Source: Mobula birostris
Lineage: Eukaryota
Assembly (NCBI RefSeq): GCF_030028105.1
Contig: NC_092375.1
Coordinates: 44,243,130 to 44,307,129, forward strand
DNA: 64,000 nucleotides
Reading direction: 5' to 3'
The first letter of the stretch is position 1. The number at the start of each line of letters is the position of its first letter. Both the position numbers and the translations under genes were made by a program. The notes beneath the pieces were generated by a model. The model was given only the letters and a program-made list of their open reading frames with translations, did no database searches and was not told where the DNA came from. Of this stretch, positions 39,845-62,328 are shown in pieces.

Positions 39845-41873
39845 GGCTACGTCCACACTAGACCGGATAAATCTGTAACCGAAGCTTTTTCCCTTCGTTT
39901 TGACCCTCCTTCCACACTGAAATGGCGTTTTCCTACCCCGAAAATGAAGATTTTCTACAACGCCCTCCAGAGTGTATAAATTTGAAAATGCCAATTGTGC
40001 AGAGCAGTGTGGACGGGGTAAACAGATATTTTAAAAAATGCTGTCACGACGTGCCGGAACAGATAGTGGTGGCAGTGCGGCATTTCATTGCTTTCTTGAA
40101 TGCAACTCCCCACACGACCTAACAATTTCAGAACAGACAGCAACGAGACTGAAGCCAGAAGAGTTAGAAATGTACTCACCAAATACTTTGACCCATAGCT
40201 TACTGAATAAATAAGTATACTCACTTTGCCCTGTTTTCTGTCCTTGCTTGTATGAAGGCGGTTTACCTATTTATGCAAGTACTTCTCCGACAATAGATGT
40301 GTAACAGCCTAATGTAACATTGTATGGAAATACAAGATAACACTGTCATAGGGAGCATGTGGGAGTGGACCCAAATGCAAGACACAGACACTGACGTACT
40401 AGGAACAGGACTAGGACTAGAGTTAAGCAAGCAAGGGAAGTGAGGAAGAAAGGGCGCTGGACATTGACACAGGCCCTGGATGAGAATAGGATGCAGGGCC
40501 TGGGCTTGGACATGGACAAGAAACACAGAACCCAGACAAGGAAATAGGAGCAAGGAGCCTGGACTAGTGAGACAGAACTCTGGAACCAGAGCCTGGACAA
40601 GGACCCAGAACCTGGGTCTTGCTTGGGACTCGGAACATGGGTCTTGCTTGGGACTCGGAACCGGAACCCGGGTCTAGGCTAGGACTCAGGACTCAGATCT
40701 TGGCAAGGACAGGGCGTTGCTACAGAACAGGACGTGGAACCCCAGCACAGGACGAGGGAACCCCAGCACCAAGCTGGGCAAGGCACGTGGACAGAATGAG
40801 AACACGAAGCCTTGACTTGGTCAACGGAGGACAGGAGCGCACAGCCTCGGTTGAGGGAGGACAGGAACATGGAACACAGAGCCAGGACCCCTCTTTGGAA
40901 ACAGGATGTAGGGCCGGGACTCATACGCAGAACACAGAGATAGATCTCTACTCAAGGTAGCGGCAGACGGCCAGACCTACCCAGCAGAGGTGAGGGCACA
41001 AAGAGACAATTCGCAACACTAGGTAGTAGCAGACAGCCGGACCTACCTAATGAAGGCGTGGACACAGAGACAGTTCAAAACAACGATAGAAGTTCCTTAT
41101 CTTGCTCCAGCAGTTGAACTTGACAGCAGTGCAGGCGAAGGTTGCAGGTGAGGGTTACAGGCGAGGCAGGGCTTCAGCAGAGACAGGGCAAGGCAAGGCA
41201 AGGCTTCAGACACTGGTTGCAGGGCGAGGTTTCAGGAGGAAGAGGCCAAGAAGGGATTCAGACGGGGGTGAGGGGAGGGTTTGACGGGAACAATCCAGCA
41301 ACCAAGCCCTCGTCTCCCGAGGTCTTTATGTTTCTGCCCAAACGAGAATCAGGTGTCTTAATTAGAGCAACTAACAGAAACAATGGAAAACAGGACAACC
41401 TGGAATATGTATCGACGGACCGGACCGGACCGTGAACTGGAATGCGGACTCACGGACCGGACCATGACACAGACATGTTTTATACATTTAACAAGGTGCT
41501 TTATTAATGCAACAGAGTTAGTGAGTTTTTCAATGTTCGTCGTCAGCCGGGTCATACTGTCCGTGAACTCCCTGTCCTTTGCCTCCATATGCTCCAGTAT
41601 TTGTTGTTTTTTAGTTTTAAGTCCTCCTGCGCGAGAGCCAACAGCAATTCCTTTTAAGTTTTTCTAGTCTTTAACTGGTCAAACGCGCACCAAGTATACC
41701 GTTTCCTCTTCGCTTGGTTTCTGTGTGTCCTGCACATGCCCAGTAGGAGGAGATTCGCCCAAATATCCGTCTAATGTGGACGGAGATTATTGAAAAACAA
41801 TTGGTGTGGATGCCTACTGTTTTTACGCGAAACCGACGTTTTCAAAATTATCCGGTCTAGTGAGGACGTAGCC
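39845..41873 (-). mobile_element. PIF/Harbinger DNA transposon (non-autonomous, accessory-protein remnant)
   Basis: 26-bp TIRs GGCTACGTCCACACTAGACCGGATAA and TTATCCGGTCTAGTGAGGACGTAGCC (1 mismatch), TAA TSD on both sides. Minus-strand coiled-coil-like remnant MEAKDREFTDSMTRLTTNIEKL. Confidence 0.88.
40344..41469 (-). mobile_element. solo LTR-like element nested in the Harbinger
   Basis: TGTCAT...ATGACA termini; homologous to 52957-54331 and 26615-27627. Confidence 0.75.
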
Positions 41874-41949
41874 TAAGCTAAAACTGCCACAAACTCGCAG
41901 CGATTTATCAGAGCTGGGTGATTCCTGTCCCGACGCTTCCTTACCCAAC

Positions 41950-41998
41950 ATGTCACTACTCGGAAACTTACTGTACACGCTCTGGCTGTTTCTTCCGG
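41950..41998 (+). CDS. leader (signal peptide) exon of the non-rearranging VJ-C1-TM Ig-superfamily gene
   Basis: ATG...MSLLGNLLYTLWLFLP G, 49 bp, phase-1 donor GTAATT, followed by a 93-bp intron: the usual Ig/TCR-type leader arrangement. Confidence 0.8.
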
Positions 41999-42091
41999 GT
42001 AATTCACGCGCTCTCTCCGTTTGACATTTATTCTCGTTGCCTTCTCATAATTTTGAATCTTTTTGCTAATTGTGGTGATTTTCTGTTCTAG

Positions 42092-42424
42092 GGCCCGCTG
42101 TTGCTCTGAAAGTGAACCAGACACCTTCAGCTCTGACCCTTCTCCGAGGACAGACAGCTCGGATCGGCTGTTCCCTGTTATCCGGGGACGAGCGGGTGGA
42201 TTCGGTGAGATATTTTTGGACGCGGACACCAGACAAACCTGTACACGGGTCCAATAATTTCTTGAAAAATGGCGCTCGGATCTCTGTATCTGTGAAGGAA
42301 GGCGGGCTGGTCATTCGGGAGGTGACTGTGGATGACTCTGACACCTACCATTGCTCAGCGCTGAGAATGGGTTCGGGCCCCTGGAAAACATATTTTGGAA
42401 TCGGAACAGAAGTAACCATCCGAG
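42092..42424 (+). CDS. germline-joined VJ (V-set Ig) exon
   Basis: Acceptor TTCTGTTCTAG; 333-bp open exon, phase 1/1. B-strand Cys (RIGC), C-strand Trp (YFW), D-x-x-x-Y-x-C (DSDTYHC) and J-like FGIGTEVTIR all lie in one exon; donor GTACAG. Confidence 0.9.
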
Positions 42425-42979
42425 GTACAGTACGTATGAAATGAAACCAGTAAACACTGGAAATACTCAGCAGACTGGGCAAAGTGTGAAGCGAGGGAAC
42501 TGGAGCCAAAGTCTCAGACCAATGGCCGAGCTGCAAAACGAGGCTTCAGGTTCCTTTCTCCAAACGCGCCCTGACCTGCTGAAGGAATCTTGTCTTCGCG
42601 GCGTTTGGTTTGTGTTTTGCTTCTGACCCAAAGTAACCGGATTAAGCAACACCGAAACAATCTCCCGCATGGGGAAGAGAAGACAAGTCGCTGAATACAT
42701 CAGCGCCACTTCCCAAAAATTCAGTGGTAGAGAGGTGGTTAAAAGGACCGACAAGAAATCGGTTAAACACTAGGGGGATTGGTAATGGCGAATCGGAACC
42801 GCGAAACGTCCTTGTTGGGACACACTGCCAGTATATTGTGTATCTTGTGACCAATGTGTGCCTGGTCGAACGGAGCTGAAAAATAAAACTAGAAAGTGCT
42901 GGAAACACTCAGCAGGTCAGGTCGCAAGTGCGGAGAGAGAAACAGAGTTAACGTTTGGTATTGAAGACCTTTCGTCAGA

Positions 42980-44312
42980 ACAGCACATTTGGAAAGCGGT
43001 GAAATGATCGGACAAAGTCAGCATGGATTTGTGAAAGGAAAATCATGTCTGACGAATCTCATAGAATTTTTTGAGGATGTAACTAGTAGAGTGGATAGGG
43101 GAGAACCAGTGGATGTGGTATATTTGGATTTTCAGAAGGCTTTTGACAAGGTCCCACACAGGAGATTAGTGTGCAAACTTAAAGCACACGGTATTGGGGG
43201 TAAGGTATTGGTGTGGGTGGAGAGTTGGTTAGCAGACAGGAAGCAAAGAGTGGGAATAAACGGGACCTTTTCAGAATGGCAGGCGGTGACTAGTGGGGTA
43301 CCGCAAGGCTCAGTGCTGGGACCCCAGTTGTTTACAATATATATTAATGACTTGGATGAGGGAATTAAATGCAGCATCTCCAAGTTTGCGGATGACACGA
43401 AGCTGGGTGGCAGTGTTAGCTGTGAGGAGGATGCTAAGAGGATGCAAGGTGACTTGGATAGGTTGGGTGAGTGGGCAAATTCATGGCAGATGCAATTTAA
43501 TGTGGATAAATGTGAAGTTATCCACTTTGGTGGCAAAAATAGGAAGACAGATTATTATCTGAATGGTGGCCGATTAGGAAAAGGGGAGGTGCAACGAGAC
43601 CTGGGTGTCATTATACACCAGTCATTGAAAGTGGGCATGCAGGTACAGCAGGCGGTGAAAAAAGCGAATGGTATGCTGGCATTTATAGCAAGAGGATTCG
43701 AGTACAGGAGCAGGGAGGTACTACTGCAGTTGTACAAGGCCTTGGTGAGACCACACCTGGAGTATTGTGTGCAGTTTTGGTCCCCTAATCTGAGGAAAGA
43801 CATCCTTGCCATAGAGGGAGTACAAAGAAGGTTCACCAGATTGATTCCTGGGATGGCAGGACTTTCATATGAAGAAAGACTGGATGAACTGGGCTTGTAC
43901 TCGTTGGAATTTAGAAGATTGAGGGGGGATCTGATTGAAACATATAAGATCCTAAAGGGATTGGACAGGCTAGATGCAGGAAGATTGTTCCCGATGTTGG
44001 GGAAGTCCAGAACGAGGGGTCAGAGTTTGAGAATAGAGGGGAAGCCTTTTAGGACCGAGATTAGGAAAAACTTCTTCACACAGAGAGTGGTGAATCTGTG
44101 GAATTCTCTGCCACATGAAACAGTTGAGGCCAGTTCATTGGCTATATTTAAGAGGGAGTTAGATATGGCCCTTGTGGCTACGGGGGTCAGGGGGTATGGA
44201 GGGAAGGCTGGGGCGGGGTTCTGAGTTGGATGATCAGCCATGATCATAATAAATGGCGGTGCAGGCTCGAAGGGCCGAATGGCCTACTCCTGCACCTATT
44301 TTCTATGTTTCT
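42980..44312 (+). mobile_element. 5'-truncated HER1-like CR1 with an uninterrupted 411-codon RT/C-terminal ORF, in the V-C1 intron
   Basis: ORF 42989-44224 has DFQKAFDKVPH, GVPQGSVLG and FADD; tail TTTCTATGTTTCTA. Confidence 0.92.
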
Positions 44313-44368
44313 AACTCTTCTACTCTCCGACCTGACCTGCTGAATATTTGTTGGTTCTCTATACCTAG

Positions 44369-44499
44369 GTCTGAAGGCTGGCTGGTTATTCGCGAAGTAA
44401 CTGCGGATGACTCTGACACTTAGCATTGCTCCGTTTTGTGAATGGATTCGAACTCCTGGAAAACATAGTTTGGGAGCGGAACAGAAGTAAACATCCAAG
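44369..44499 (+). pseudogene. truncated duplicate of the 3' half of the VJ exon (copy C)
   Basis: EGWLVIREVTADDSDT*HCSVL*MDSNSWKT*FGSGTEVNIQ G with donor GTAAGT and three in-frame stops; the downstream intron repeats 42425 onward. Confidence 0.85.
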
Positions 44500-45133
44500 G
44501 TAAGTATGAAATGAAACCAGTAAAGGATGGGAATGCTCAGCAGGCGAGGCAAGCGAGGGAACTGGAGCCAACGTCTCAGACCAATGGCCGAGCTGGAAGA
44601 AGATTCTTTTCTCCAAACGCGCCCTGACCTGCTGAAGGAATCCTTTGCTTCTGAACCGTGAAACGTCCAACAAGGAGCGCACTAGCAGCGTAATTGTAAC
44701 TGTAACTGGCCGGGGTGTGCCTGGAAGAAAGAAACGGAAAGGTAAAACCAGGACATGATGGAAACACTCGGGGCCCGTTGCTGATGAGAAACAAACGTTT
44801 GGTATTGAAGAACCTTCGTCAGAACTCTTCGACCTGAGACCTTACGTCTGTTTCTCTTCCCAAAGTTGCGACCTTACCTGTTGGATATTTCCAGTGGTTA
44901 CTGTTTTTAATTTTAGATTTTCACTTGCTGTAATATTTCGAATTCGATCCGTTCCCGGGCTGTATTTTGTTTCTCTTCCTGACGGTGTGCATTTCGAGAC
45001 TCAAAATAATCAACTCGATTCACATTGTTACCTTTGTATCGTGCACCGTCTTCAGTTCCGTCCACTCTTGCTGTCTGTATCCATTTGGGTTACAGTAAAA
45101 TTCACCATGTGTTAATTCTCCCATTCTGTGCAG

Positions 45134-45413
45134 CGAAGCCTGACGTCTCCCTCTCTCTGGATCCCAAGAACGAAGCTGCTGGGATTCAGACTCTGATTTG
45201 TGTGGCGGCGGGATTTTTCCCGAAAGATCTGAGTATTTCTTGGGCTGTAACGGGAGATGTCTCGTATGAAACAAAGGCGGATCCGCTGAGGGTAAACGAG
45301 CCTGAGCTTCCGGCTGCTGGTGAACGACTCCCGGTGGGAGTCAGTTCGGGTCGCCACCTGCCTGGTTCGACACGGTACAGGGAGTGTGAAGACAAGTTTC
45401 ATTTTCAAGCGAG
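45134..45413 (+). CDS. C1-set Ig constant exon, frameshifted as given
   Basis: Acceptor CCCATTCTGTGCAG. AKPDVSL...LICVAAGFFPKDLSISW (C1 signature), then after a shift near 45297 SLSFRLLVNDSRWESVRVATCLVRH...FKR G with donor GTAGGT. Length 280 bp is not 3n. Confidence 0.85.
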
Positions 45414-46639
45414 GTAGGTGGTTTACACAGGGAGTAAATCTCACAACCTGCTTCTCCCAATTATGGGTGAAAGTGGAAGTAAATTTTGTAAATTTATACA
45501 AACCATGGGGTGAACGCAATTCGTCAATCTGAAAAGTAAAAGTTTGGGTAACGCCCTCAATATCTACAGTCTTTTATTGCAAAATCATTTATTTCAATAT
45601 ACTGAATTGATTAAAAAAACTGGCGCTGTAATGTTATGGTAAAACAGGCAGAAGATACAGACAGGTTAAATAGAATAATTACAAGAGCGCAGGGTTCCAG
45701 TTAGGTAGATTATCGGACGAAGACAAGATCATTTTTATTAGAAAATGGAAGGCCAACGATATGAAAAAAATGTTAACGATTAATTAAGAATTGTCCACTC
45801 ATAAAGCAATGAAAGGAGTTAGGACGGTTGCAGTAAGTCCGGACTCGGAGTTGCTAGAGCTGACTTGGAGGCAATTACATGCGGCAGAACCAAGGCAGGG
45901 CGAAGTCGAGGAAGGATCCGAGGCGAGCTTCGATCGATTTAAGAGCCGAACTGAATCGGAAAGGTCGTGCACCGACTGAATCGAGCTGGCGTAGCCTAAG
46001 AGCATATCGAAGTGGCAGAGAGCGAGGAACGATCCGCGATTTGTACGATTTAAGCGTCGGGCCAGTTTGAATTAGTTTGTGTGTGGGGGTTGGAAGCGAG
46101 GGGCGGGTCACCTCGGCTCAATACTCCGCGGGGTTTGCTGGTATCTGCGTGGCACGGAGGCGGTGGCCTGCAGTTCAGTGGTCTTCTGGATCGTCTGCAA
46201 TGATGCCTGGCTTTGTAAAGTTCAGTTCTCGGTGGTGTTCCCTTGCCTTTATTTATTGCATTATTTTTTTCTCTCTCCCTGTACACGAGATGTTTTACGG
46301 TCTTACTTTGTTTCTAATGGGTTCTGTTGGGGTTCTCTGCCTGTAAGGAGACGATTCTTAAGCTTGTATAAAGTATACATACTTTGAACTTTGAACAGGT
46401 ATACCACTTTAGATACAGTTGGCGTGGTTGACCGAGCAGAGGAAAGCCACCGTGGAAAACGACAGTCAGTGGGTGTAAAAATAGGATGATTTGGCAGGCA
46501 AAGGCGTGGCTGAGGACCTGGTGCAGGGGACAGGGGTTCAGATTCATGGATCATTGGGATCTCTTCTGTGGAAGGTACAAACTGTACCCGAGGGGCTCCG
46601 ATATCCTTGGGGGCAGGTTTGCTAGATTTGTTCGGGAGG

Positions 46640-46895
46640 TAGAAAAAGATCTAGTGTTATCACTGTATATATAACAAAGCTCTCGCTCTAAGTAAGAACT
46701 GGAATTCGATTGTAAACAAGGTGGGGGAGCTGAAACCTGATTGGATGAAGACTTACCAGTCCGGAGGGTCGGGCAACGGGGGTTTAAATACCACTGCACT
46801 CGACATGGCCAGGCATCATCCCTGAAGAAGATGGCGGAGTTTGACATTGAAACGTTAGTTATAATCGATACCCGGCTGGAAGTCCGAGAAGAGTT
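46640..46895 (+). mobile_element. second Penelope-like family terminal insertion
   Basis: 15-bp TSD GATTTGTTCGGGAGG (46625-46639 and 46896-46910); same terminus as 59030-59220. Confidence 0.75.
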
Positions 46896-48496
46896 GATTT
46901 GTTCGGGAGGGTTTAAACTAATTTGGCAGGGTGATGGGAACAGGAGTGATAGTTGTGAGGATGAGGCAATTGGCTTACAAACAAAAGCAATGTGTAATGA
47001 GACTCCTAGAAAGGAGGGGCTGATGAAATGGCAAAACTGCAGTCAACAGGATGAGTTGCAATGTAAAAGGGGAAAAAATTGAAAAGGATGAATACAGTGC
47101 TGAAGTTGTAATATTTGAATGAGCGTAGTAAACGGAATAAGGTAGGTAGGTGCACTGGTAGCACAGTTACAGATTGGCAGGTTTGATGTTGTAGGCATGA
47201 CTGAATCATGGCTGAAAGCAGATTATAACTGGAAGGTTAATGTCCAAGGATACACATTGTATCAAAACGACAGACAGGAGGGCAGAGGAGGCGGCATAGC
47301 TCCACTGGTAAAAACTTAAATCATTAGAAAGAGATGACGTTTGGATGAAAGGTATTGAATCGTTGTGGGTAGAGCTAAGCCACTGCACGGGTAAAAATAC
47401 CCTGATGGGAGTTATATACACACCCCCAAATGGTACTAAGAATGCGGTCTGCCAATTATAATGGGAGCTAGGAAATGCATGTCAAAAAAGCAATGTTATA
47501 TTTGTCATGGGCGATTTCAATATATAGGTAGATTGGGAAAATCAAGTTGGTGCTGGATTCCAGGAGAGTGAATTTCCAGAGCGCCTACAAGCTGTTTTTT
47601 TTTTTAGAGCAGCTCAGCTAATGGTTGAGGCCACCAGGGATCAGCTATTCTGGATTGGGTGTTGTGCAGTGAACCAGAATTGATTTGAGAGCTGAAGGTA
47701 AAAGAACCCTGAGTGGCAAGTGATCATAATATGATTGAATTCACCCTGAATTTGAGAAGGAGAAGCTAAAGTCAGCTGTATCAGTATTACAGTGGAGTAA
47801 GAGGAATTACAGAGGCATGAGAGAGGAGTTGGCCAGAATTGATTGGAAAAGAACACTGGCAGGGATGATGACATAGCAGCAATGTCTGGAATTTCTGGAA
47901 GCAATTCAGCAGGCACAGGATAAGTACATCCCAAAGAGGAAGGCCTATTCCAAAGGCAAGGTGACACAACCAGGGCAAACAAGAGAAGTCAAAGCCAACA
48001 TAAAAGCCAAAGACAGGGAATATAATAGAGCAAAAATTAGTAGGACGTTAGAGGACTGGGAAGCTTTTAAAAACCAACAGAAGGCAATTTCAAACATCAC
48101 TAAGAAGGAAAAAATGGAATACAAAAATAAGCTGGCCAATAATATTAAAGTTTCTTGAGATACATAAACTGTAAAAGACAAGTGTGAATAGATATTAGAC
48201 CACTGGAAAATGATGCTATTGAGGTAGTAATGGGGGACAAGTAAATAGCAGACAAAGTATTTTGCATCTGTCTTCACTGTGGAAGACACCAGCAGTATGG
48301 TGGAAGTTCCAGAGCGTCAGGGGCCAGAAGTGTGTTGATTTGCCATTTATAAGGAGAAGGTTATTGGGAAACTGAAAGGTGTGAAATAAGTCACCTGGAC
48401 CAGATGGTGTACACTCTAGGGTTCTAAAAAAGGAGGCAGAAGAGATTGTGGAAGCATTAGTAATGATCTTTTAAGAATCACTAGTTTCTGGAATGG

Positions 48497-48713
48497 CCGG
48501 CTGGTGGCAGAGTGGCATCAGCACCGGACTGCGGAGTGAAGGCTCCCAAGTTTGAATCCAGCCAGTTCCCTTGCACGCTTTCCATCCGTGCTGGGTTGAG
48601 CATCAAGCTAGCGACTGGGCCTCGTAAAAATAAGAAAGCCTGCTAGAAAAAATGCCGTCATGACGGCGTCCTGATGACTCCACTCGGAGTTAAGGGCTTT
48701 CTTCTTCTTCTTC
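48497..48713 (+). mobile_element. tRNA-derived SINE with (TTC)n tail
   Basis: A box TGGCAGAGTGG, B box GTTTGAATCC, 14-bp TSD AGTTTCTGGAATGG (48483-48496 and 48714-48727). Confidence 0.85.
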
Positions 48714-48744
48714 AGTTTCTGGAATGGTTCCAGAAGACTGAAAA

Positions 48745-49225
48745 AGGTGCAAATAGAAACATAGAAAACCTACAGCACAGTACAGGCCCTTCTGCCCACG
48801 AAGCTATGCCAAACATGTCCCTACCTTAGAAATTACCTAGGGTTACCCATAGCCCTCTATTTTTCTGAGCTCCATGTACCTATCCAGGAGTCTCTTAAAA
48901 GACCCTATCGTATCTGCTTCCACCACCACTGCTGGCAGCCCATTTGACACACTCATCACTCTCTGCATAAAAAACTTACCCCTGACATCACCTCTGTACC
49001 TACATCCAAGCACCTTAAAACTGTGCTCTCTTGTGCTAGCCATTTTAGCCCTGGGAAAAATCCTCTGACTATCCACATAATCAATACCTCTCATCATCTT
49101 ATACACCTCCATCAGGTCACCTCTCATCCTCCGCCACTCCAAGGAGAAAAGGTCGAGTTCATTCAGCCTATTCTCATAAGGCATGCTCCCCAACCCAGGC
49201 AACATCCTTGTAAGTCTCCTCTGCA
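48745..49225 (-). mobile_element. CR1 3' fragment
   Basis: ERVQRRLTRMLPGL...KFFMQRV; (TTTCTAT) tail; similar to the plus-strand copy at 59600-60345. Confidence 0.8.
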
Positions 49226-49462
49226 CCCTTTCTATGAGAGATGGCACTATGGCAAACTAGGAAACTTGACAATACTCCAACAATCTTTTTGAAAAATGAG
49301 ATCTAGCACATACTAACTTACTGCTGTGCTGTGTGGCTTGCAGAGTAAAGACCACTTATTACTTACTAGGTTTGTAAACAGTCAACTATTAGCCTCAAAA
49401 ACAGGAACAGCACTGACACAGAAGCCTAGATATTTACAAAGTCAGATGCTTGTTTTTCAAAA

Positions 49463-51940
49463 TTAAAGCCTAGTTCTTCTGGATTTCTTCGCAGCAGAGT
49501 CCTTGATCACAAAATAATCTGCAGATGCTGGGGTCAAAGCAACACTCACAACACGCTGGAGGAACTCAGCAGGTCGGGTGAACCTACCAGCCTTCTCCTT
49601 CCCACCCTCCCCCCACCTTCTTTATAGGGCCTCTGCCCCTTCCCCCTACAGTCCTGACGAAGGGTTCCGGCCCGAAACGTCGACCGATCTTTTCCAGGGA
49701 TGCTGCCCGACCTGCTGAGTTCCTCCAGCGTGTTGTGAGTGTTGCAGAGTCCTTGATCAGATGACTAAAATCCAGTTTCCAAACAAGATTACTTTCCAGT
49801 GACATCAAAGTAAGATGATTTAGCCTGTCCTGTCCCATTGTGGATCTGAGCCTATTCTTCACTAGCTTGAGCTTGGAGAAAGATCGCTCACCTCTTGCAT
49901 TTGTGACAGGGAGAGTCAGGTAAAGCCTCAAAGCAATGCTTACATTAGGGAAGATGACCCGCAAGTTGTATTTTTTTTCTCTGAGGAAGCATAAAAGCTC
50001 TTGCAGATGAAATATCTTTGCCACTTACAAATTCCCTGAAATGGATAATCTCCTCCACAAAGTCTAACTGCAGGTCAGCTAAATATCTGCTTTGGAGATA
50101 GATGCTCCCTTGTGCAGATCTTGTACAGAGAGAGAAGGGATATTGTTTAGGATGCCAAATGTATTGTTAAAGTCATTATATGATGCAAATCTGCAATCAA
50201 TTTTTGCAAGTAATCTATCCATCACGACCAAAAAAAAGTAGCTGAGAATTTTTCTCTGGCTGGCAAGCCAACATCAGGTGTTGTGGATTCATCCAGAAAG
50301 GTTTTAAGTTTTCTTTGTCATTGGGTGTCTTCTTTGTACACTTGTGAGACTGTTGGAGACATAGTTTTAGCTTGGGTCTCAAAAGTACCAAATTGATCAT
50401 GCAATCTTGCTATGCATCCCCGTAGTGATCTCACCAAATCCACAGCATTACACAGGTCTAGATTTACAGCTTGCAATGCAACACTTGCACTTTCAAAGCG
50501 CTGAAGAATGCAATGCCACAATTTGCTCAGAAAAGCTATCTCAAGCTTGTCCAATTTTTTGATAATGAACTTGCTTCATTTCTAGTTGCCACATTCTGAT
50601 TAATGTCATCTGCAATGCTCTTTAACGAATCTTGAATATTGGCATGATTTCTGCACAATGCCTGTGTGGCTTCTGCATGTGCAGCCCATCTAGTATTAGA
50701 GACAGACTTCAGAGTTTCAGTGCGCTTGTTCACATTAGGCTGAAGTCCTGCGGTCACCACCTTCCACCTAGAAGTTGACTTGGAGCAGAAGTTGAACACA
50801 TTCTGCACGAAGCTGAAAAAAATCAGCTGTTTCAACACAACAGTTGACACTGTTGATTCCAACAAGATTCAGTGTGTGTGCTGCACATGGAACCCACTCA
50901 GCAAGTGGATTGATTTCCTTGATGCGGGATTGTAAGCCTTTGTATGCACCGGACATATATGCAGCTGTCATAAGCACAGCCCCCTGCAGTTGCTTATGTC
51001 AATATTCACCTCTCCTAAAACTTTGAGCAGAGACTCTCAATGAGTAGAAATCGTAAGAATCGCTCCTGAATGTTTCCATCAGTTGACACATAACGTAAAA
51101 TGAATGTGAGCTGATCTACGTGTGCAACATCTGTGCTTGAATCGATGCTAATAGAAAAGTATTTGGCTATTTTGACTTCACTTGACGATCCCTGACAGAA
51201 CTCGATTGCTCTTGAGCTCAATAAACTCCTCACATGTTTTAGGTGAGGGATATGAAGGGGTGCCTGATCCTGCATTTCCAAATTTCTGTATGTGCGCCTT
51301 CAAAAACGGGTCAAGCTCACTTATTACCTCTAGAATGCCCATCATGTGGTTGCTGTTATCAGGCCTGACAAATATGTCACTGGAGCCTCGGATAGCCAGT
51401 CTCCTCTCGACCAAAAACTTCACAACCGCCACCACTCTTCTCAATACATCGGTCCAGTAGATACACTTTGACTCGAACTGTTTTTGCAGTTCTGTATCAA
51501 TTCTCCCGCTGTCAAACGCTAGTGTAACATAGGTCAGTATCGTTTTCCTGCGGTGTTTGCTATTTTCATGCTGTCCTATGTGCTCAGCGGCACGTTTCCA
51601 GTTGCTAAATCCAGTTTCAAAGATAGACTTGACAGTTCCCATCACTGAAGATGCAGTGTGCAAAACAAAACACACAGCCGGTGGGAGGGGAATATAAGAG
51701 CCATTGACTTGATACGTACTGGCCTTTTACGAGCTTGTGTTTGAAGTGAAATTTGGAGAAAAAATTTCTCTGCTGTTTGTATACTCGTTCTGAAGTTTTG
51801 ATATCCACATCCTTATTCTGGCAGGACTTTGGCACTTTCTTAGCCCAGTACGCTCGGACTGAATCATCTAACGTTTCCTTTCCCCAGTGAGCAGGATCAG
51901 TGCTGTAAGGATCCTCAGTAGTGGTAACGTTAACATCCTC
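49463..51940 (-). mobile_element. decayed hAT transposase (ZnF_TTF / DUF4371 / hAT dimerization type)
   Basis: Successive minus-strand fragments QWLLYSP..GCVFCF, GFSNWKRAAEHIGQHENS, YFSISIDSSTDVAHVDQL, WVPCAAHTLNL, TRWAAH and FPNVSIALRLYLTLPVTNARGERSFSKLK, with the final stop at 49463. TIRs not identified. Confidence 0.85.
49510..49743. mobile_element. Penelope-like insertion with an inverted terminal copy
   Basis: 16-bp TSD GCAGAGTCCTTGATCA (49494-49509 and 49744-49759); 49510-49578 is the reverse complement of the 3' tail. Confidence 0.88.
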
Positions 51941-52956
51941 CTTCCTCGCCTCCCACAGTAGCCTAGGGTACATCTCATCTGGTCCCGGTGACACATCCAA
52001 TTTGATGCTTTCCAAAAGCTCCAGCATATCCTGTTTCTTAATACCTACATGCTCAAGCTTTTCAGTCCACTTTAAGTCATCCCTACAATCGCCAAGGTCC
52101 TTTTCCATAGTGAATACTGAAGCAAATTACTTATTAAGTACCTCTGCTATCTCCTCTGGTTCCATTTACACTTTTCCACTGTCACACTTGATTGGTCCTA
52201 TTCTCTCATGTCTTATCCTCTTGCTCTTCATGTACTTGTAGAATGCCTTGGAATTTTCCTTAATCATGTCCACCAAGGCTTCTCATGGCCCCTCCTGGCT
52301 CTCCTAATTTCTTTCTTAAACTCCTTCCTGCTAGCCTTATAAACTTCTAGATCTCTATCATTACCTAGTTTGTTGAACCTCTTGTAGGTTCTTCTCTTGT
52401 ACACTTGCCACAAAAGGAGAGGGGCAGAAGAAGGGAAATCCTAGGCTAGTTACCAGTCTGACATTAGTGGTTGGGTGGCAGTTGGTGTCAATTATTAAGG
52501 GTGTGGTTTCAGGGCACTTGGAAGCACATGATAAAATAGGGTGTAGCCAGAATGGTTTCCTCATGGGAAAATCTTGCCTACCCATCTCTTGAAATTCTTT
52601 GAAGAAATAACAAGCAGAATAGACAAAAGAAGAATAGGTTGATGTTGTGTACTTCGATTTTCAGAAGGCTTTTGACGACGTGACACACATGAGGTTGCTT
52701 AACAAATTAAGAGCCCATGGTAGTACAGGAAAGATGGACTAGCATCAATTAAGCAGTGGCTCATTGGCAGGAAGCAAAAAATGGGAATAAGGGAACCTTT
52801 TCTGATCGGTGGCCAGCGACTAGAGGTGTTCTGAGAGGGAGTGTGTGTTTTGGGACTGATTCTTTTGACATTATATGTCAATGACTTGGATGACAGAACG
52901 GATGGTTTTGTTGCAAAGTTCATTGGTGATTACAAAGATACAGTAGATGGAGGGAC

Positions 52957-54331
52957 TGTCATGGTCCGGTCCGTAAGGTCCGCATTCCGGTTCACGGTCT
53001 GGTCCATCGACCCTTGCTTCAGGTTTTCCTGTCTACCCTGTTTCTTTTCTTGTTGAGCTCTAATTGAGGCAGCTGATGCTTGTTGGGGCTGGCTGCATAA
53101 ATACCTTCAGAGACCAGGGCGTGGCTGCTGGATTGTTCTTGTCCTTACTCCTTGTATCCCTTCCCCTGCCTTCTGTTTCCTGGCCTGAAGCCCTGCCTTG
53201 TCTTGCCGGTAACTCTCGCCTCACCTGAAGTTTTGTCTTGCCTTGCATTGCCTGAAGCCTTGCCTTGTCTTGCTGTCTTGTCCTGGAGTCACCCCGTACC
53301 TAGCTCCCTTCCTGTCCCTTGCCTCCGCCAGGTAAGTCAGGCTGTCTTGCCATTACCCTGCGGTTGGTTCTGTCCCTTCCTGTTCCTAGCCTCTGTCAGG
53401 TAAGTCAGGCCGTATTGCTGTTACCTACAGTGGGTTCTGTCCCTTCCTAACCCTTGCCTCCGTCGGGTAAGCTAGGCCGTCTTGCCGTTACCTGCGGTTG
53501 GTTCCGTCCCTTCCCTCCATCGGGTGGAGTTCCACGCCCTGCCCAGGAGTTCCGCACCCTGCCCAGGAGTTCCATGCCCTGCCCAGGAGGAGCCTCCAGT
53601 CTCCTGCCAAGCCTCGCCTGAAGTCTCTAGCCTCTAGCCTCAAGCCTGAAGACTCCAGCCTCTTGCCTCCTGCCAAGCCTCGCCTGAAGTCTCTAGCCTC
53701 TAGCCTCAAGCCTGAAGACTCCAGCCTCTTGCCTCCTGCCAAGCCTCGCCTGAAGTCTCTAGCCTGTAGCCTCAAGCCTAAAGACTCCCGCCTCCTGCCT
53801 CCTGCCAAGCCTCGCTTCAAGCCTCTAGCCTCAAGCCTGAAGACTCCAGCCTCCTGCCAAGCCTCGCCTCGTCTCTAGCCTCTAGCCTCAAGCCTGAAGA
53901 CTCTAGCCTCCTGCCTCCTGCCAAGCCTTGCCTCTAGTCTCTAGCCTGTAGCCTGAAGACTCCAGCCTTCTGCCTCCTGCCAAGCCTCACCTCAAGTCTC
54001 TAGCCTCTAGCCTCCTGCCTCCTGCCAAGCCTCGCCTCTAGTCTCTAGCCTCAAGCCTGAAGACTCCAGCCTCATCCTGCCTGCCAGCCAAGCCTCGTCC
54101 TTGCCTAGTTCTGGGGTCCGAGCCAGAGACAAGACCCAGGTACTGGGTCCTTGTCCAGTCTCTGGCTCGGGGTCCAAGCCCGGGCTCCTAGCTCTCTTGT
54201 CCAGTCCTGTTCTGGGTTCCTGGTTTTCGTGTCCACGTCCTTGCCCTCACCCTGTATCCTTCTCCTGTCCCTAGTTCTTCAGTGTCTGTGTCTTGCACTT
54301 AGGTCTGTTCCTAGCCACCTCCTTATGATGA
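52957..54331 (+). mobile_element. solo LTR-like element inserted in a CR1
   Basis: Starts TGTCATGGTCCGG and ends TATGATGA (degenerate ATGACA); GGAC on both flanks (52953-52956 and 54332-54335). Confidence 0.75.
53604..54080 (+). repeat. about 66-bp minisatellite within the LTR
   Basis: Unit CCTGCCAAGCCTCGCCTGAAGTCTCTAGCCTCTAGCCTCAAGCCTGAAGACTCCAGCCTCTTGCCT, about 7 copies, progressively degenerate. Confidence 0.9.
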
Positions 54332-57300
54332 GGACTGAACCAAGGATGTAATGTTGAGTCTTTATAAAGCAATGGTGAGGCCTCATTTGGAGTATTGTGA
54401 GCAGTTTTGGGCCCCTTATAAGACCTCAAGACATAGGGGCAGAATTAGGCCTTTCAGCCCATCAAGTCTGCTCCACCATTGCATCATAGCTGATCGCGGA
54501 TCTCACTCAATCCCACACACCTGCCTTCTTGCTATATTCTTTGATGCCCTGGCTGACTAGGAAATGATCAGCTTCTGCCTTAAATATACAAATGGACTTG
54601 GCTTCCACTGCAGTCTGTGGCCGAGCAGTCCACAGATTTACTACTCCCTGGCTAAAAGAATTTCTCCTTTCCTCTTTCTAAAGGCTCAACCCTTAATTTT
54701 GAGGCTGTACCCTCTAATTGAGGATACCCCACCATAGAAAGCATCCTCTCCACATCCACCCTATCTGGTCCTTTCAACATTTGGTGAGTTTTAATGAGAT
54801 TCCCCTGCATTCTTCTAATTTTCGGTGAGTACAGACCCAAAGTTGCCAAATGCTCCGCCTTATCAAATGCCTTCTGAAAATCCAAGTAAATGACATCCAC
54901 TGCCTCTTCCTTGTCCACCCTGCTTGCTACTCCCTTGAATAACTCTAACAGATTTGTCAAGTAAGATTACCCTTCACAGAAACCATGCTGAATTTGACTT
55001 ATTTTATCATTAGTCTCCAAGTACCCTGAAACTTCATCCTTATTAGTAGACTCCAGCACTTTTCCAACCACTGAAGTTAGGCTAACTGACCTATAATTTC
55101 CTTTTTTTTTGCCTTCCTCCCTTCTTAAGAGTGAAATAACATTTGCAATCTTCTGGGACCATCCAGAATCAGGCGATTCTTGGAAGATCATGACAAATGG
55201 ATCTATTATCAACCTCTCTCAGGAAGGATGTGCTGACACTGGAGTGGGTTCATAGGAGTTCATCATAGGAAAATGATTCCAGGATTGAAGGGCTTGTTGA
55301 AAGGGCTGCAGAGAGTGGATGTGGAGAGGATGTTTCTAATGGTAGGAGAGTCTAGGACCAGAGGACCAGAAACCGCAGCCTCAGAATAGAGGCTTTCATA
55401 ATGGAGATGAAGAGGAATTTCTTTAGTTAGAGTGGTAAATCTGTGGAATTTGTTGTCACAGGTGGCTGTGGAGGCCAAGTCATTTCATATATTTAAGGCA
55501 GAGTTTGATAGATTCTTGATCGGTTGGGGCAGGAACGGAGATGGAGAAAAGGCAGGGGATTGGGGCTGAGAGGGAAAATGGATCAGCCATGATGAACTTG
55601 ATGGGCCAAATGACTCAATTATACTCCTTTGGTCAGTCAGGTCTTTGGCACTGTGGCTGAGAAGGGAAGGGAGGAAAAGAGTGAGCTGTAATGATAGTAG
55701 TTTCATTGGTTTGGGGAACAGACAGATGGTTCTGTGGATGAGATTGAGATTCCTGCACTGTGTGGTGCCACAACAACAACCACTCACTGAATTTCACAAG
55801 ACCAAAGAGCTGATTATTGACTACAGGTGGGTGAAACTGGAAGTCCATAAGCCAGTCCTCTTTAGGAGATCAGAGGTGGAGAGTGTCAGCAGCTTTAAAT
55901 TCCTCCGTGTTACCATTTCAAAGAATCTGTTCTGGGTCCTGCATGTAAGCAATAAACAAATTTGCGATGACAACAAAATTGGGGGTGTAGTCGATAGTGA
56001 GGAAGGCTATTAAAGCTTGGAATGGGAACTGGACCAGATGACAAAAATTGGCTGAAAACTGGCAGTGTGAGGTGGTGCAGTTTGGTAGGACAAACCTGGC
56101 TTGGATTTACACGGTAGAGCACTGAGGAGTGTGGTAGAACAGAGAGGTATAGTGGAATATAAATCCATAATTCTGAGAAAGTAGCATCACAGATAGAGCT
56201 GTTAAGAAAGGTTTTGGCACATTGGCCTTCATACTCCAGTATTGAGTACAGGAATTGGGAACGATATGAAGTTGTGTATGACGTTGGTAAGGCCTAATTT
56301 GGAGTACCGTGTGCATTTCTGGTCACCTGTCAATAAGAATGAAGGAGTGCCGAGAAAATTTACAACAATGGTGCCAGGACTTGAGGACTTGAGTTATAGG
56401 GAAAGGTTGAATAGGTTAGGATTTTCGTCCATAGAGCACAGAAGACTGAGGGGAGATTTGATTGAGGTATACAAAATTCTGAGCGGTAGGTGCAAGCAGG
56501 CTTTCTCCACTGAGAATGGGTGAGACCAGAACTAGAGGTCATGGGTTAAGATGAAAGGTGAAATGTTTAAAGGGAACATAAGGGGTTATTTCTTCACTCA
56601 GAGGGTCGTGAGAGCGTGGTATGAGCTGCCAGCAGAAATTGTGGATGCAGGTTTGATTTTAACGTTTAAGAGAAATTTGATAGGTGCATGGAGAGAAGTT
56701 ACCATTGGAAAATTAATGTATGCTTGAATTTATTTTCCTACTATCAGTGTTCTTTAAACCATCTGCACAGCAGACTTCAGCTTAATATATATGCTACTGT
56801 GGATTATATTCTATAAAGGAAAATTACTGTATTTCCAGCAAGATTAGTCTTGGGGTACTTAAATTGTATTTAACCAAATATAATTTGTCATAAATATCCA
56901 TGTAGATCATACTGTCACTTTGCTAGAGTGCTATTATAGTCTTATCAGTGTATATTTGGAATATAATGAAACATAATATTTAGTTAAAACAATTAAAACC
57001 AGAATTTAACTTGTGAAAAAATGTAAGTTGCCACACAGTTTACATGTGGTCTACTTGTGGTCAAGTAACTGCAATACAGCTGTAGTTTGAGATGAAACAT
57101 TTGATTTGTAGTGGAAGATCTAAATTGCACAATTAAAGTGAATATATGGGTGCAGTTGTAAATCAGAGTATGCATGAGCACTGAGTAACTAATGATGCAC
57201 CATGGAAATATTTGCAGAAACTTGGTCATGGAGGGACATCAGATCATTGTTAGACTTTTTAAAATGCATTTGATTTCACATGATCTCTAGCCACTGTTAA

Positions 57301-58080
57301 TTCCCTCCCCCATGAGAGCAGCTAATAATGATATTGAATGAATTGATGCTAATTGTTTAGAATGATCATTTCCTTTTTTTAAAAACTGAATCTATTTTGG
57401 ACTTTGCAATCCACAAGTTATTCCTTCAGGTTTACTTAGAATAAGTATACACTACAAGAAATTCAAATACATCATTAATATTTAATCTGAAATGTTCCTT
57501 CCCCAAATGACAAATATTTTCAGCATTTAAAATGTTCAAAATCTGGGATGTTTTACTTTTCAATTACTATTGAAAGACACTACTAAACTCTAGAACATTC
57601 AGATATTATGACATTTCCAATGCTTGTTTCATACTGTGCTGCATGAATTATACTGAACCACATTTAGCACATTTCATTAATAAACAAAATGTAATTTGCA
57701 TCAGATGAACTGATTAATTTTAATTCCAACATCTGGTTTTGATATTGTGTTTTACTTTTGAAAAAACCTCACAGTTCCTATCAATGCTTTTTAAGATTAG
57801 AGAGAACCCTAGAAGCAATGCAAGTATGGGTCAAAAATATGTGATTGTCATACACATGCAAAAATAGGTCAGTGACAATCCAATTTATTTTAAGATGCTC
57901 AGATCAGAAAACAAAACTGCAAAAAAACAAAGAAGCCATCTATGCCAGGTCTTTTGTCTCTCAGTTATTCTATTAGAAAAATGGCCAGATTTTTAAAAAA
58001 TGCAGCAGCAAGAATTTCAGTTTGCATTAAAGGTTGTTAGATTATTGAAGGAGAATGATGATAATCTGTCTACTCTATTT

Positions 58081-58352
58081 GCAGATGACCATCTTATCCC
58101 GTTTATCCTACGTGCTGTCATCATCACCGTGGGAACTAGTTTATTATTGCTGGTAGTGATTGTGTTCAGTTTTGTTGGTAAGTTGCAATGAATGAAATTC
58201 TTTAGAAACTGTATTAGCAGATGACCATCTTATCCCGTTTATCCTACGTGCTGTCATCATCACCGTGGGAACTAGTTTATTATTGCTGGTAGTGATTGTG
58301 TTCAGTTTTGTTGGTAAGTTGCAATGAATGAAATTCTTTAGAAACTGTATTA
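58081..58352 (+). repeat. perfect 2 x 136-bp tandem duplication containing the whole TM exon
   Basis: 58081-58216 and 58217-58352 are identical by eye; the second exon copy is at 58221-58313. Confidence 0.95.
58085..58177 (+). CDS. transmembrane exon of the VJ-C1 gene (Arg in the TM segment)
   Basis: Acceptor CTCTATTTGCAG; 93 bp, phase 1/1; (D)DHLIPFILRAVIITVGTSLLLLVVIVFSFV; donor GTAAGT. Read-through gives GKLQ-stop. Assignment to the upstream gene rests on strand, phase and order. Confidence 0.72.
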
Positions 58353-58574
58353 GGGATTATTCTGGAGTTATGAAATTATATGAATATAGCAGTTTAATTC
58401 AAGCAAGAAACAGTCCGCAGTTCTTAATGTAAACAAACCTGTAATTAAAAGGACGGTTTCGCAAACAAACAATATGTTTGGCTGCTGAAAGATATGGCTT
58501 ACAAAGTGAAGTGACCATGAGTTCTGGTTTGCATCAGCCAAACACAAAACAATGGGAAATAAACTCTTCTTGGG

Positions 58575-60345: not shown

Positions 60346-62328
60346 TTCCTACCTACCTGGTTTCACCTATCCTCCTTTCCCACCCCCACCTTTTCATTCT
60401 GGCATCTGCCCCCTTCCTTTCCAGTCCTGAAGAAGGGTCTTGGCCCAAAATGCTGACACTATTAATTTCCCTAGATGCTGCCTGACCTGCTGAGTTCCTC
60501 CAGCATTTTGTGTGTTGTTTTGCATTTTCAGGACCTACAGAATTTCTGTTTCCGGCATTTGAACATGAGAATATGCTTTCACTGTAGATATGTAACTCAA
60601 ACTTAAAATAATGAAGTAAATGATGTCATTGTAACTATTGAAATTGGATTGAGTATCTATTGTTATTATTGATCTGAAGGGCATAAAAATGTTATGTACT
60701 TTGAATATGAGAGACTCTGCTGAGGGTCTCCAGGAGAATGCAAGCTTGTGAAGAATAAAGACCTTTATATCACCAGCTTCATTGTCTCTCTGGTCACTCA
60801 GATCACAAGTTACAATAAAGATTTATACTCCATCTTAAATCAGTGAACCTTAATTTTGAGAGTGTGACTCCTGTTTCTAGACATCCCAGTCAGGGGAAAT
60901 GTATTGAAATACTTACAAAGTTCAATGAATAAATGAGCCCCCCTCTCAGTAAACCCACCCAGCTTAATCTCTCCCTTGAACAGATGAAGGATCAGTTTAG
61001 TACATCCTTTTTTGTGTAATGGTGTTCCATTTCGTTTTTCAAGATGAGCTATGGATTGTAGAGTTGTTTTCAATTACTTGTCTCATTTTAAATTTTTTTA
61101 TATTTGTTTACATAATTAAATGTTGAGCTTTATTATTGCAATCCACAAAAGTTATCCCAAAAGCTTTATTTTGATAAATGTAGACTACATTCATCTATAA
61201 ATGTAGGTAAATGTCAACAGGCAGGAAATGCATCAATGTGGAATAAGCAGCATTACTGACCACTAAGGCAAAGCCTTTTGGCAAAATAAAAATTACATCC
61301 AACTAATTCAACAAATTACATGGTAATTACTGAATAGGACAATATTTTTAAATGTAATCCTACGATTACATTTAAAAATATCCTAGATATACTGTACTGT
61401 ATACTTATGCAGAGTTTTCTTCTGGAATATTATAGTTCGCCAAATGCGATATCATGGGTAGCCAAAGTTTTTACCCAGTTTGGTACTTATGATTCTGTGG
61501 GAGTACTGGCAAGATTTGCAAGATCTCAGAACTTGTTGAAGAATGAATTTAAACCAGAGATCTAACAGTGCATTGTAACTGTAGAATTCACTAATCCAAG
61601 TGTAAACTGTTGGTTATAAACTGGTACTCTAAATGTAAATGGGCTCACTTTCATCTGAGTAGCCAAAGCAAAGGAAGTGCAATGGCACATTGGTTTACAC
61701 AAGAGAAATTAAAATTACTTTTCCCACATGGAATCCTGGAGAATGGAGATGACATTAAATGAGGGAATGTTCTCTCAATGCAAGAAATGCATTGATTTAA
61801 GTTTCATCTGTCACCCAAGAAGCTGGAACTGTCACATTGTACTAAATTTTTGACAATGTCAATTTAATCACTAACCTAAGTGCAATTTGAGCTGCGTTTT
61901 ATTTCTTATCATTATATTAACAATGCATGAGTAGGCACTTCATTTGAACGCAAAAGTAAATAGCTTGGCTGCTTGAATCTTAAAGGATGCTAAGAACATA
62001 AAAACAATTTTTCTAATTTTAGTATTTTGCAGGTAATAGCCAATATAACATTGATGATGAATTTGTTGCTGTATCTTATGTTTATCAAGACAACATCTAA
62101 CCAAATGTGGGATGGGGATTAACCTTCGAGGCAATTGTACAGTATATACCAAATGTAAATAACTTTAGTATATGAAGCTTTTGTATGTTGTCATAATTAT
62201 GTAACAGCATTCAGGTGTTTTGATATGTTTCAGAAATCCTGTAGCATTTTCTGAGAACCTTTTTAAGAGTTTACTTTGACAGTTATGTTAGATTTTGAAA
62301 AAATATCTTTTTTTCCATTTAGATCGAC

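Follow-up and report, generated by a model that had tools for sequence, protein, structure and literature searches.

Organization of the receptor locus

The window (the whole stretch of Mobula birostris DNA analysed, 64,000 nucleotides) contains a receptor gene on the plus strand that is flanked by a TRIM45-like gene and by TTF2. The gene comprises five exons—encoding a leader, a single-exon VJ domain, a C1-set domain, an arginine-bearing transmembrane (TM) segment, and a 14-codon tail—separated by introns that are of the GT-AG type and of phase 1 throughout. The following features were assigned:

9653–11846, minus strand: exons of the TRIM45-like gene (RING, B-box, coiled coil), from open reading frames and Pfam RING and B-box matches
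30577–30870, plus strand: decayed paralogous V exon with a frameshift and stops, 11 kb upstream, from tblastn and translation
41950–41998, plus strand: exon 1, split leader (MSLLGNLLYTLWLFLP-G) with a GT donor; start identical in P0059 and in the M. hypostoma orthologue P0049
42092–42424, plus strand: exon 2, germline-joined VJ domain, 333 nt, phase 1-1, intact; Pfam V-set, 34 bits
42254–42328, plus strand: gene-conversion tract within the V exon; 15 of 16 informative sites agree with the animal's own inhibitory paralogue (L007) and not with M. hypostoma (L004)
42979–44313, plus strand: LINE in intron 2 with a reverse transcriptase reading frame of 411 aa, from the open reading frame and a break in colinearity; absent from M. 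hypostoma
44358–44546, plus strand: relic V exon in intron 2, 3′ half with three stops, from tblastn; colinear with M. hypostoma L004
45134–45413, plus strand: exon 3, C1-set domain, 280 nt where 294 are expected; Pfam C1-set match confined to its first half
58072–58353, plus strand: 136-bp tandem duplication copying the TM exon (second copy 58221–58313), 98% identity; single-copy in M. hypostoma
58085–58177, plus strand: exon 4, connecting peptide and TM with the conserved Arg (DDHLIPFILRAVIITVG...); homologous to the TM of P0049, P0050, and P0048
62323–62366, plus strand: exon 5, 14-residue cytoplasmic tail and TAA; identical to the P0049 tail
62329–62478, minus strand: TTF2, final coding exon, which overlaps the receptor gene in a tail-to-tail arrangement

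A preliminary description of this DNA had placed leader, VJ, C1, and TM peptides on the plus strand, and all four are found where it put them; its exon boundaries were approximately right but off by 1–2 nt (the exon coordinates above are the corrected set), and its count of four exons was too low. With the fifth exon, which overlaps the TTF2 stop region in antisense, the gene extends about 4 kb further than had been assumed. No additional Ig exon was detected by tblastn between 45.4 and 58 kb, leaving the gene with one C1 exon. The J-like strand YFGIGTEVTIR is, as had been proposed, encoded together with V in exon 2, and a scan for recombination signal sequences (RSS) over 41000–46500 returned a single weak heptamer/nonamer match (1+3 mismatches) in an intron and none at the VJ exon, in agreement with the earlier observation. 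The VJ exon is 82%, 71%, 52%, and 50% identical to its orthologues, and a search of 1.8 billion proteins with the V exon yielded matches in Hypanus, Pristis, Scyliorhinus, and Narcine at E values from 4e-50 to 1e-19, well outside what chance would give.

The LINE is a high-copy repeat, since its contig depth amounts to 1e5–1e6; its insertion and the duplication of the TM exon are both specific to M. birostris. In Pristis, a comparable relic V and C lie upstream of the active gene.

The order TRIM45, receptor gene, TTF2 recurs in the window, in Pristis (L001), in M. hypostoma (L004), and in Hemiscyllium (L005), which answers the synteny check suggested in the preliminary description. The Pristis orthologue adjoins a TRIM45-type neighbour with a filamin domain, and the TTF2 neighbour in M. 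hypostoma and Hemiscyllium carries GRF zinc ribbon, SNF2, and helicase C domains. The position beside TRIM45 and TTF2 is constant from sharks to rays.

A deletion in the C1 exon

Aligned with five orthologous or paralogous C1 exons, to which it is 78–90% identical at the nucleotide level, exon 3 is missing 14 nt at about 45298–45301. Because of this loss the M. birostris gene is, on its sequence, a transcribed pseudogene. An exon of 280 nt cannot be in phase 1 at both its ends: the canonical splice sites and uniform phase reported earlier hold for the introns, but the C1 exon conceals a frame break, and the chain that had been assembled as an intact gene is interrupted. The reading frame of the first half of the exon (up to ...DPLRVNE) is not that of the second half (SLSFRLLVNDSRWESVRVATCLVRH...), and the shifted frame leads to a premature TGA at 58086–58088, two codons into the TM exon. 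Exons 4 and 5 correspond to the activating-type TM and tail of P0049, P0050, and P0048 but are out of frame in M. birostris, such that no reading frame is open across all receptor exons. At the protein level, the deletion would take out the D–E loop of the C1 domain and the beginning of strand E, and would leave strands E to G, including the second cysteine, out of frame. The existing RefSeq model for the locus, "signal-regulatory protein beta-1-like" (P0059, 221 aa), is the frameshifted product and terminates at the premature TGA in exon 4.

An error of assembly or sequencing, with the gene in truth intact, could conceivably account for the frameshift, given a single source assembly and the frequency of indels among assembly errors, yet we regard this as highly improbable. 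The difference spans 14 nt of non-repetitive sequence and is no homopolymer slip; read-derived DNA contigs match the assembly exactly over 44613–45600; and an RNA contig from a different sample (45135–45365) carries the same deletion, aligning to the genome there without any gap or mismatch. Moreover, the same exon has accumulated eight substitutions unique to the M. birostris copy, several of them at conserved residues; of the six that lie beyond the deletion, five are nonsynonymous when read in the original frame, and one falls on an invariant serine. The M. birostris data consist of one assembly (GCA_030028105.1, to which the window is identical) and one further RNA sample, possibly from the same individual, and Logan contigs lose minor variants, so that heterozygosity could go unseen; it may be that the deletion marks a polymorphic null allele and is not fixed.

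The V exon carries no unique substitution at all. This, together with continuing transcription, indicates that inactivation was recent or that some product is still in use. RNA depth is 13–22 over the exons, with introns mostly empty; one RNA contig covers 42167–42422 and departs from the genome at the exon 2 donor. Splice joins are seen indirectly, as contigs that stop at exon borders, no joint being listed. The sole product that the transcript could yield is predicted to be a protein of 221 aa devoid of a TM segment, and the transcript itself is a predicted target of nonsense-mediated decay (NMD), which is expected under the 50–55 nt rule from a stop located 89 nt before the last exon junction. 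A useful product might nevertheless persist, either as a V-only Arg-TM receptor generated by skipping of the C1 exon—all introns being of phase 1, joining of exon 2 to exon 4 keeps the frame—or as a soluble V-domain decoy of 221 aa. The phase-1 symmetry of every exon, transcription of the locus, and a V exon that is intact, free of unique substitutions, and recently converted from a functional paralogue speak for this possibility. We consider it improbable all the same, since the RNA contigs seen include exon 3 with no exon-skipping joint reported, half a C1 domain lacking its second cysteine should misfold, and NMD is expected from the position of the stop.

An elasmobranch family of probable paired receptors

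Members of this VJ-C1 receptor family were found in 13 elasmobranch species. At family level, and in sharks as well as rays, they bear out the non-rearranging architecture—single-exon VJ, C1-set domain, charged TM—that had been read from the M. birostris sequence. Intact activating orthologues are present in M. hypostoma, Hemitrygon, and Pristis; P0049, P0050, and P0048 combine an Arg-TM with a short tail, and Hemiscyllium possesses an unannotated Arg-TM exon of compatible phase. The activating TM has a conserved arginine near its outer face, followed by a 14-residue tail or by a stop inside the TM exon. In each species examined, the same chromosome also encodes an inhibitory partner whose ectodomain is nearly identical, whose TM is uncharged, and which has ITIM/ITSM-like tyrosines. 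The long tail of the inhibitory form displays the motifs LxYASV, TEYAVL, and TxYASL, and the tyrosine motifs are conserved in P0047, P0003, P0054, P0055, P0057, P0053, and P0062. In the stingray Hypanus and the manta Mobula the inhibitory genes have two C1 domains as near-identical tandem copies, the second of which is evidently a recent duplicate.

The ectodomains of activating and inhibitory members are 99.5% identical in Pristis and 96.2% identical in Hemiscyllium, and in a tree they group by species and not by receptor type, which points to gene conversion. The conversion tract in the M. birostris V exon is a case at hand: its flanks show the reverse pattern, siding with the M. hypostoma orthologue. 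Given an ITIM/ITSM-like partner and gene-converted, near-identical ectodomains, the family is, as judged from motifs and alignments, a SIRP-like paired inhibitory/activating system and not an Ig or TCR orphon. These two features also align the family with SIRP-type innate regulatory receptors and not with the single-chain pre-RAG receptor ancestor whose architecture the preliminary description had invoked.

Relationship to SIRP

RefSeq labels family members as SIRP-like (SIRP beta-1-like or PTPNS1-like) and some as "Ig kappa-like" or "TCR beta-like". With mammalian SIRP alpha and SIRP beta-1 the family shares C1-set sequence preceded by a V domain that carries a J-like GxG strand, an inhibitory member with several ITIM-type tyrosines, and an activating member with near-identical ectodomain, basic TM residue, and minimal tail; the pairing of ITIM and basic-TM members with similar ectodomains is found here at the level of motif and sequence. 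True orthology to tetrapod SIRP alpha/beta would account for these RefSeq names, for the common design of V(J)-C1 ectodomain, ITIM partner, and activating partner, and for Foldseek matches to SIRPA and SIRPB1 (E 5e-11) whose identity of 24–25% is the highest in the list. The V-C1 junction GTE..I/V-R-AKPD, which may resemble the SIRP d1/d2 junction, would fit as well. Nevertheless, orthology appears rather unlikely. Human SIRPs reside at 20p13 and human TRIM45 and TTF2 at 1p13/1p12, whereas in elasmobranchs the receptor genes neighbour TRIM45 and TTF2. SIRP alpha, beta, and gamma have a V followed by two C1-set domains, an arrangement that is not seen in the manta-type receptor with its one C1, and the family's arginine sits near the outer end of the TM in place of the mid-TM lysine of SIRP. 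By fold, TCR beta, CD80, and CD200 score equally well or better, SIRPA and SIRPB1 being among many V-C1 matches of equal quality. The V profile is nearer to Ig, TCR, and VNAR V domains than to SIRP d1: SIRP is not among its best 60 PDB profile matches, which are led by IgL V, TCR V alpha/delta, VNAR, and CD8 beta.

Relationship to Ig, TCR, and UrIg

The best Foldseek matches in PDB and Swiss-Prot are TCR beta and Ig chains (E about 1e-12, identity 20–25%), with which the family shares the two-domain V(J)-C1 fold and the J motif FGxGTxVxI. Such matches, which extend to TCR V alpha, IgL V, VNAR, and Fab chains, could suggest—as could the "Ig kappa-like" and "TCR beta-like" labels—descent from a rearranging IgL or TCR locus, as a germline-joined orphon or a relic, an outcome that the preliminary description had named as contradicting its own reading. 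This origin is extremely doubtful and was not borne out. VJ is fused in the germline of every species, the V/J split and rearrangement of TCR and Ig genes are lacking, and no RSS was found in the window scan; the genes lie outside Ig and TCR loci, at a position beside TRIM45 and TTF2 that does not change from sharks to rays; and they have an ITIM-bearing twin, a TM arginine without TCR-type motifs, and no membrane-proximal interchain cysteine. Furthermore, the nearest non-family matches in an exhaustive search with V were assorted uncharacterised IgSF proteins, with neither Ig nor TCR among them. Overall, TCR beta, Ig, UrIg2, SIRP, and B7 stand at roughly equal distances from the family by sequence and fold.

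UrIg and UrIg2 are non-rearranging VJ-C genes of elasmobranchs with 3 to 11 C domains, linkage to either the MHC or the Ig/TCR complex, expression mainly in liver and gill, Fc-like dimers, and no ITIM/Arg-TM pairing (PMC12227049). Like the present family, they have C1-set domains, a split leader, and V and J in one exon; among single PDB domains, the C1 of UrIg2 gives the best match to the family C1 profile (48.6 bits). The manta family differs in its one C1, its TRIM45/TTF2 linkage, and its organization as paired receptors. Membership in UrIg/UrIg2 was considered and rejected on account of the single C1 (at least three C domains being required) and of the TRIM45/TTF2 linkage. The UrIg2 paper (PMC12227049) does not mention the TRIM45/TTF2-linked family, nor was a paper on such a family found in the literature covered, which did not include the PRARP/VJC1 paper (Ohta et al. 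2019); PRARP figures in passing literature mentions as an MHC-linked VJ gene.

Teleost NITRs, KIR, LILR/PIR, CEACAM, CD300, and Siglec-5/14 likewise consist of inhibitory and activating twins with ectodomains homogenized by gene conversion, the activating member often being lost or null. These receptors, however, are without a canonical C1-set domain, NITRs having V or V-I and KIR/LILR having C2/I-set domains.

Proposed mechanism and implications

We favour, as a probable interpretation, that the locus represents the activating partner in a pair of non-rearranging IgSF receptors shared across elasmobranchs, the M. birostris copy being transcribed but a pseudogene. In each member of the pair, a split leader would precede a VJ domain encoded by a single exon, one C1-set domain, and a TM segment. 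In species with intact genes, both receptors may bind one common putative ligand via the V domain. By their motifs and by analogy to SIRP, KIR, and PIR, the inhibitory form would recruit SH2 phosphatases and the Arg-TM form would signal via an ITAM adaptor with an Asp residue, akin to FcR-gamma or DAP12, while recurrent gene conversion would hold both ectodomains alike.

The manta copy itself is of lesser weight, as a clean and recent loss of an activating partner; such losses are known from KIR, Siglec-14, and SIRPB1. For annotation, it follows that the 221-aa RefSeq "protein" at this locus is a frameshifted pseudogene product. The family matters more broadly, since non-rearranging genes that combine a J-bearing V with a true C1 are rare and central to the debate over the target of the RAG transposon, and it constitutes a conserved and syntenically fixed case of such genes in the oldest jawed vertebrates. 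It differs from UrIg and UrIg2 in forming an inhibitory/activating pair with concerted ectodomain evolution, which ties the antigen-receptor module to SIRP-style innate regulation. Tentatively, the TRIM45/TTF2-linked family may represent a third, undescribed elasmobranch lineage of non-rearranging VJ-C1 genes beside UrIg and UrIg2, located within the chromosome-1-type MHC paralogon, where B7-family genes are its neighbours. If so, the antigen-receptor-type V(J)-C1 module would have served as a paired inhibitory/activating innate receptor before sharks and rays diverged, and the family would be the cartilaginous-fish root of the SIRP family that has long been sought, or else a branch that left the antigen-receptor precursor independently.

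Structure and Decay of the Window Gene

The receptor gene of the window is divided into five exons (E1 to E5), all of them read directly from the DNA.

Features of the receptor locus and its neighbors (window positions)
41950-41998, +, E1, split leader
42092-42424, +, E2, VJ exon of 333 nt; Pfam V-set
45134-45413, +, E3, C1 exon of 280 nt; Pfam C1-set, first half only
58085-58177, +, E4, connecting peptide and TM, 93 nt
62323-62366, +, E5, 14-residue tail and TAA
58072-58353, 136-bp tandem duplication including E4; second exon copy at 58221-58313
9.6-11.8 kb, −, RING/B-box ORFs (TRIM45-like)
from 62329, −, TTF2 C-terminus

All introns of this gene are of phase 1 and GT-AG, as the preliminary description had stated, and a heptamer/nonamer scan around the V exon was negative, in agreement with the absence of RSS noted there. 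That description counted four exons and missed the terminal tail exon; it located the TM exon correctly and overlooked its tandem duplication. Every peptide it quoted is found on the forward strand, including those of the C1 domain, where TCLVRH and CVAAGFFPKDLSISW nevertheless lie in different frames of one exon. The length of E3 is not divisible by three, and the spliced coding sequence is in frame across V and the first half of C1 and out of frame thereafter, with a TGA at 58086-58088, two codons into E4. What had been taken for an unbroken gene is a broken copy.

Alignment of the C1 exon with those of Mobula hypostoma, Hypanus (two copies), and Pristis (two genes) places a 14-nt gap in the window sequence only, at about 45298-45301, where an ED(L/K/H)TY segment is lost. 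An assembly error as the source of the frameshift is rejected on the basis of DNA contigs, RNA contigs, and the kind of indel. Contigs of M. birostris DNA reads show zero differences from the assembly across 44613-45600, and across 45135-45365 an RNA contig of a different sample has neither gap nor mismatch; the 14-nt deletion is therefore real and transcribed. Contig depth at exons is about 13-22, intron bins are mostly empty, and the V-exon RNA contig diverges from the genome at the donor site. The window C1 exon also carries eight substitutions absent from both orthologue and paralogue, one C1 substitution alters a Ser invariant across the family, and of the six that follow the deletion, five change an amino acid in the original frame. 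The 221-aa RefSeq model of M. birostris (P0059) equals the product of the shifted frame, and its locus (GCA_030028105.1, chromosome CM057561.1) corresponds base for base to window 39950-60088. As the premature stop lies 89 nt 5′ of the last exon junction, nonsense-mediated decay of the transcript is expected under the 50-55 nt rule. In the window, the activating partner of a receptor pair is represented by a pseudogene that is both annotated and transcribed.

The M. hypostoma locus is colinear with the window and 96-97% identical; relative to it, the window shows two gains, a LINE in intron 2 (42979-44313) and the duplicated TM exon. This LINE is sense-oriented (+) with a 411-aa reverse-transcriptase ORF, and its family is very high-copy and transcribed (depth 1e5-1e6 in all runs). 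Intron 2 also holds, in a region colinear with M. hypostoma, a relic 3′ half of a V exon (44358-44546, +) with three in-frame stops, whose sequence (SEGWLVIREVT...) is nearer to the ancestral activating-type V than the present E2 is. A further V exon, paralogous and decayed by a frameshift and stops, is found 11 kb upstream of the receptor gene (30577-30870, +), and comparable V and C relics precede the active gene in Pristis (L001, 16880-17870). Over the intronic stretch 44467-44847, RNA run X9 of M. birostris yields a contig depth of about 8-34 and M. hypostoma RNA yields none; this RNA could come from a repeat, from a misplaced paralogue, or from an exon missing in the annotation.

A Family of Activating-Type and Inhibitory-Type Receptors

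Orthologues at E 4e-50 to 1e-19 came up when the V exon served as query in an exhaustive HMMER search. Those of Hypanus, Pristis, and Scyliorhinus are named "signal-regulatory protein beta-1-like" or similar in RefSeq, and that of Narcine is labeled just "uncharacterized protein". Further searches added members from M. hypostoma, M. birostris, Hemitrygon, Heterodontus, Heptranchias, Hemiscyllium, Stegostoma, Mustelus, and Cetorhinus, some of them under Ig-kappa-like or TCR-beta-like labels. The family splits into two classes. Activating-type members (M. hypostoma P0049, Hemitrygon P0050, Pristis P0048) continue 3′ of C1 with DD(H/Y)LIPFI-R-... and a TM helix bearing an invariant Arg close to its outer end, and terminate in a 14-residue tail or at a stop within the TM exon; E4 and E5 of the window match this TM and tail. 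Inhibitory-type members, which include Pristis P0047, Hypanus P0046, M. birostris P0062, and catshark P0003, continue with GF(S/P)K-YYF..., an uncharged TM, and a tail of ~120 residues with the conserved motifs LxYASV, TEYA(V/I)L, and TxYASL. By tblastn, no orthologue-type uncharged TM and ITIM exons are present in the window; they belong to a paralogue ~325 kb from the window gene. The preliminary description did not notice this inhibitory twin, on which the biology turns. The inhibitory genes of Hypanus sabinus (L003) and M. birostris (L007) have a V-C1-C1 layout with two near-identical tandem C1 exons, a recent duplication that is not seen in sawfish or sharks.

In the window, Pristis, M. 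hypostoma, and Hemiscyllium, the activating gene is flanked on one side by a TRIM45-like gene and on the other by the 3′ end of TTF2, so that the linkage proposed as a check on the gene held in all four loci examined, from a shark as well as rays. The inhibitory gene resides on the same chromosome, at a distance of ~70 kb in Pristis and ~325 kb in M. birostris. In Hemiscyllium ocellatum, the RefSeq model (P0056) is truncated and uses another short terminal exon. Between C1 and TTF2 of this locus (L005, 19090-19180), an unannotated terminal exon of compatible phase with C1 reads ...AVRYIIILVGLSLL... up to a stop (exon product GSRFTAVRYIIILVGLSLLVMVMIYVQIFC, then the stop codon); the Arg-TM form is therefore older than the split between sharks and rays. 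E5 (62323-62366, +) overlaps a TTF2 exon (62329-62478, −) by 38 nt in antisense, at the last 12 codons and the stop of TTF2, and this coding overlap may be the reason why the tail is identical to that of M. hypostoma P0049.

The ectodomains cluster by species and not by receptor type. Activating and inhibitory ectodomains are 99.5% identical in Pristis and 96.2% in Hemiscyllium, and the activating ectodomain of Hemitrygon groups with the inhibitory one of Hypanus. Within the window V exon, 15 of the 16 informative sites in 42254-42328 agree with the inhibitory paralogue of M. birostris, and on either side of this tract the agreement is with the orthologue of M. hypostoma. At the sequence level, the species-wise ectodomains and the V-exon tract bear the signature of paired receptors kept matched by gene conversion.

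Relation to Known Families

The best sequence matches of the V domain are shark VNAR, TCR V alpha/delta, IgL V, and CD8 beta; outside the family, an exhaustive search returned only assorted uncharacterised IgSF proteins for V, and profile and C1-region searches returned nothing beyond the family except a few unnamed shark IgSF proteins. A synteny check of the nearest frog and skate V matches found no neighboring genes within the stretch covered. The C1 domain is a canonical C1-set (Pfam 42-55 bits for the single C1 of P0049 and P0003; the 87 bits of P0062 are a sum over its two C1 domains). Its best single-domain PDB matches are UrIg2 C1 (48.6 bits) and IgG CH3 (46 bits), in a profile ranking where multi-domain heavy chains take the lead and no nearest family stands out. 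The intact M. hypostoma protein was modelled with AF2 at moderate confidence only (pLDDT 71.7). Compared by Foldseek, the model matches TCR beta and Fab chains among PDB entries and TCR beta, CD80, CD200, SIRP alpha/beta-1, B7-H6, PD-L1, butyrophilins, Ig kappa, and TAPBPL in Swiss-Prot (E 1e-13 to 1e-9; SIRP alpha/beta-1 at 24-25% identity). As judged from this model, the fold comparison is a broad tie across IgSF families with no clear winner.

That the gene is an Ig/TCR orphon is ruled out by fixed synteny, the absence of RSS, and the ITIM twin, and the original reading of a non-rearranging gene holds for the family. Identity with UrIg/UrIg2 is likewise ruled out, since the receptor here has a single C domain, differs in its linkage, and is organised as a pair. 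Tblastn with four orthologues detected no further C-domain exons between E3 and the TM exon, and a UrIg-like multi-C layout is rejected; these 12.7 kb contain only LINE and transposase-like ORFs. A run of ORFs in intron 3 (49584-52108, −) may be what is left of a DNA-transposon transposase. An uncharacterised 414-aa protein of the skate Amblyraja radiata (P0045, locus L010), with a VJ domain (GEGTRLTV) and a C1-set of 76 bits, is encoded by a VJ-C1 gene distinct from the TRIM45/TTF2-linked family.

By a motif-level analogy, the receptors would work in a SIRP-alpha/beta-like manner, with orthology to SIRP unproven. The family differs from SIRP in having one C1 domain, a TM Arg rather than the SIRP Lys, and another genomic neighborhood. 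No description of the TRIM45/TTF2-linked family was found in the searchable literature, a search that did not cover the papers defining PRARP/VJ-C1. The gene family first glimpsed in the window is real and rather interesting: it adds a new, or in any case uncharacterised, member to the known class of SIRP-like paired receptors that have a VJ-C1 module of antigen-receptor type as their building block.
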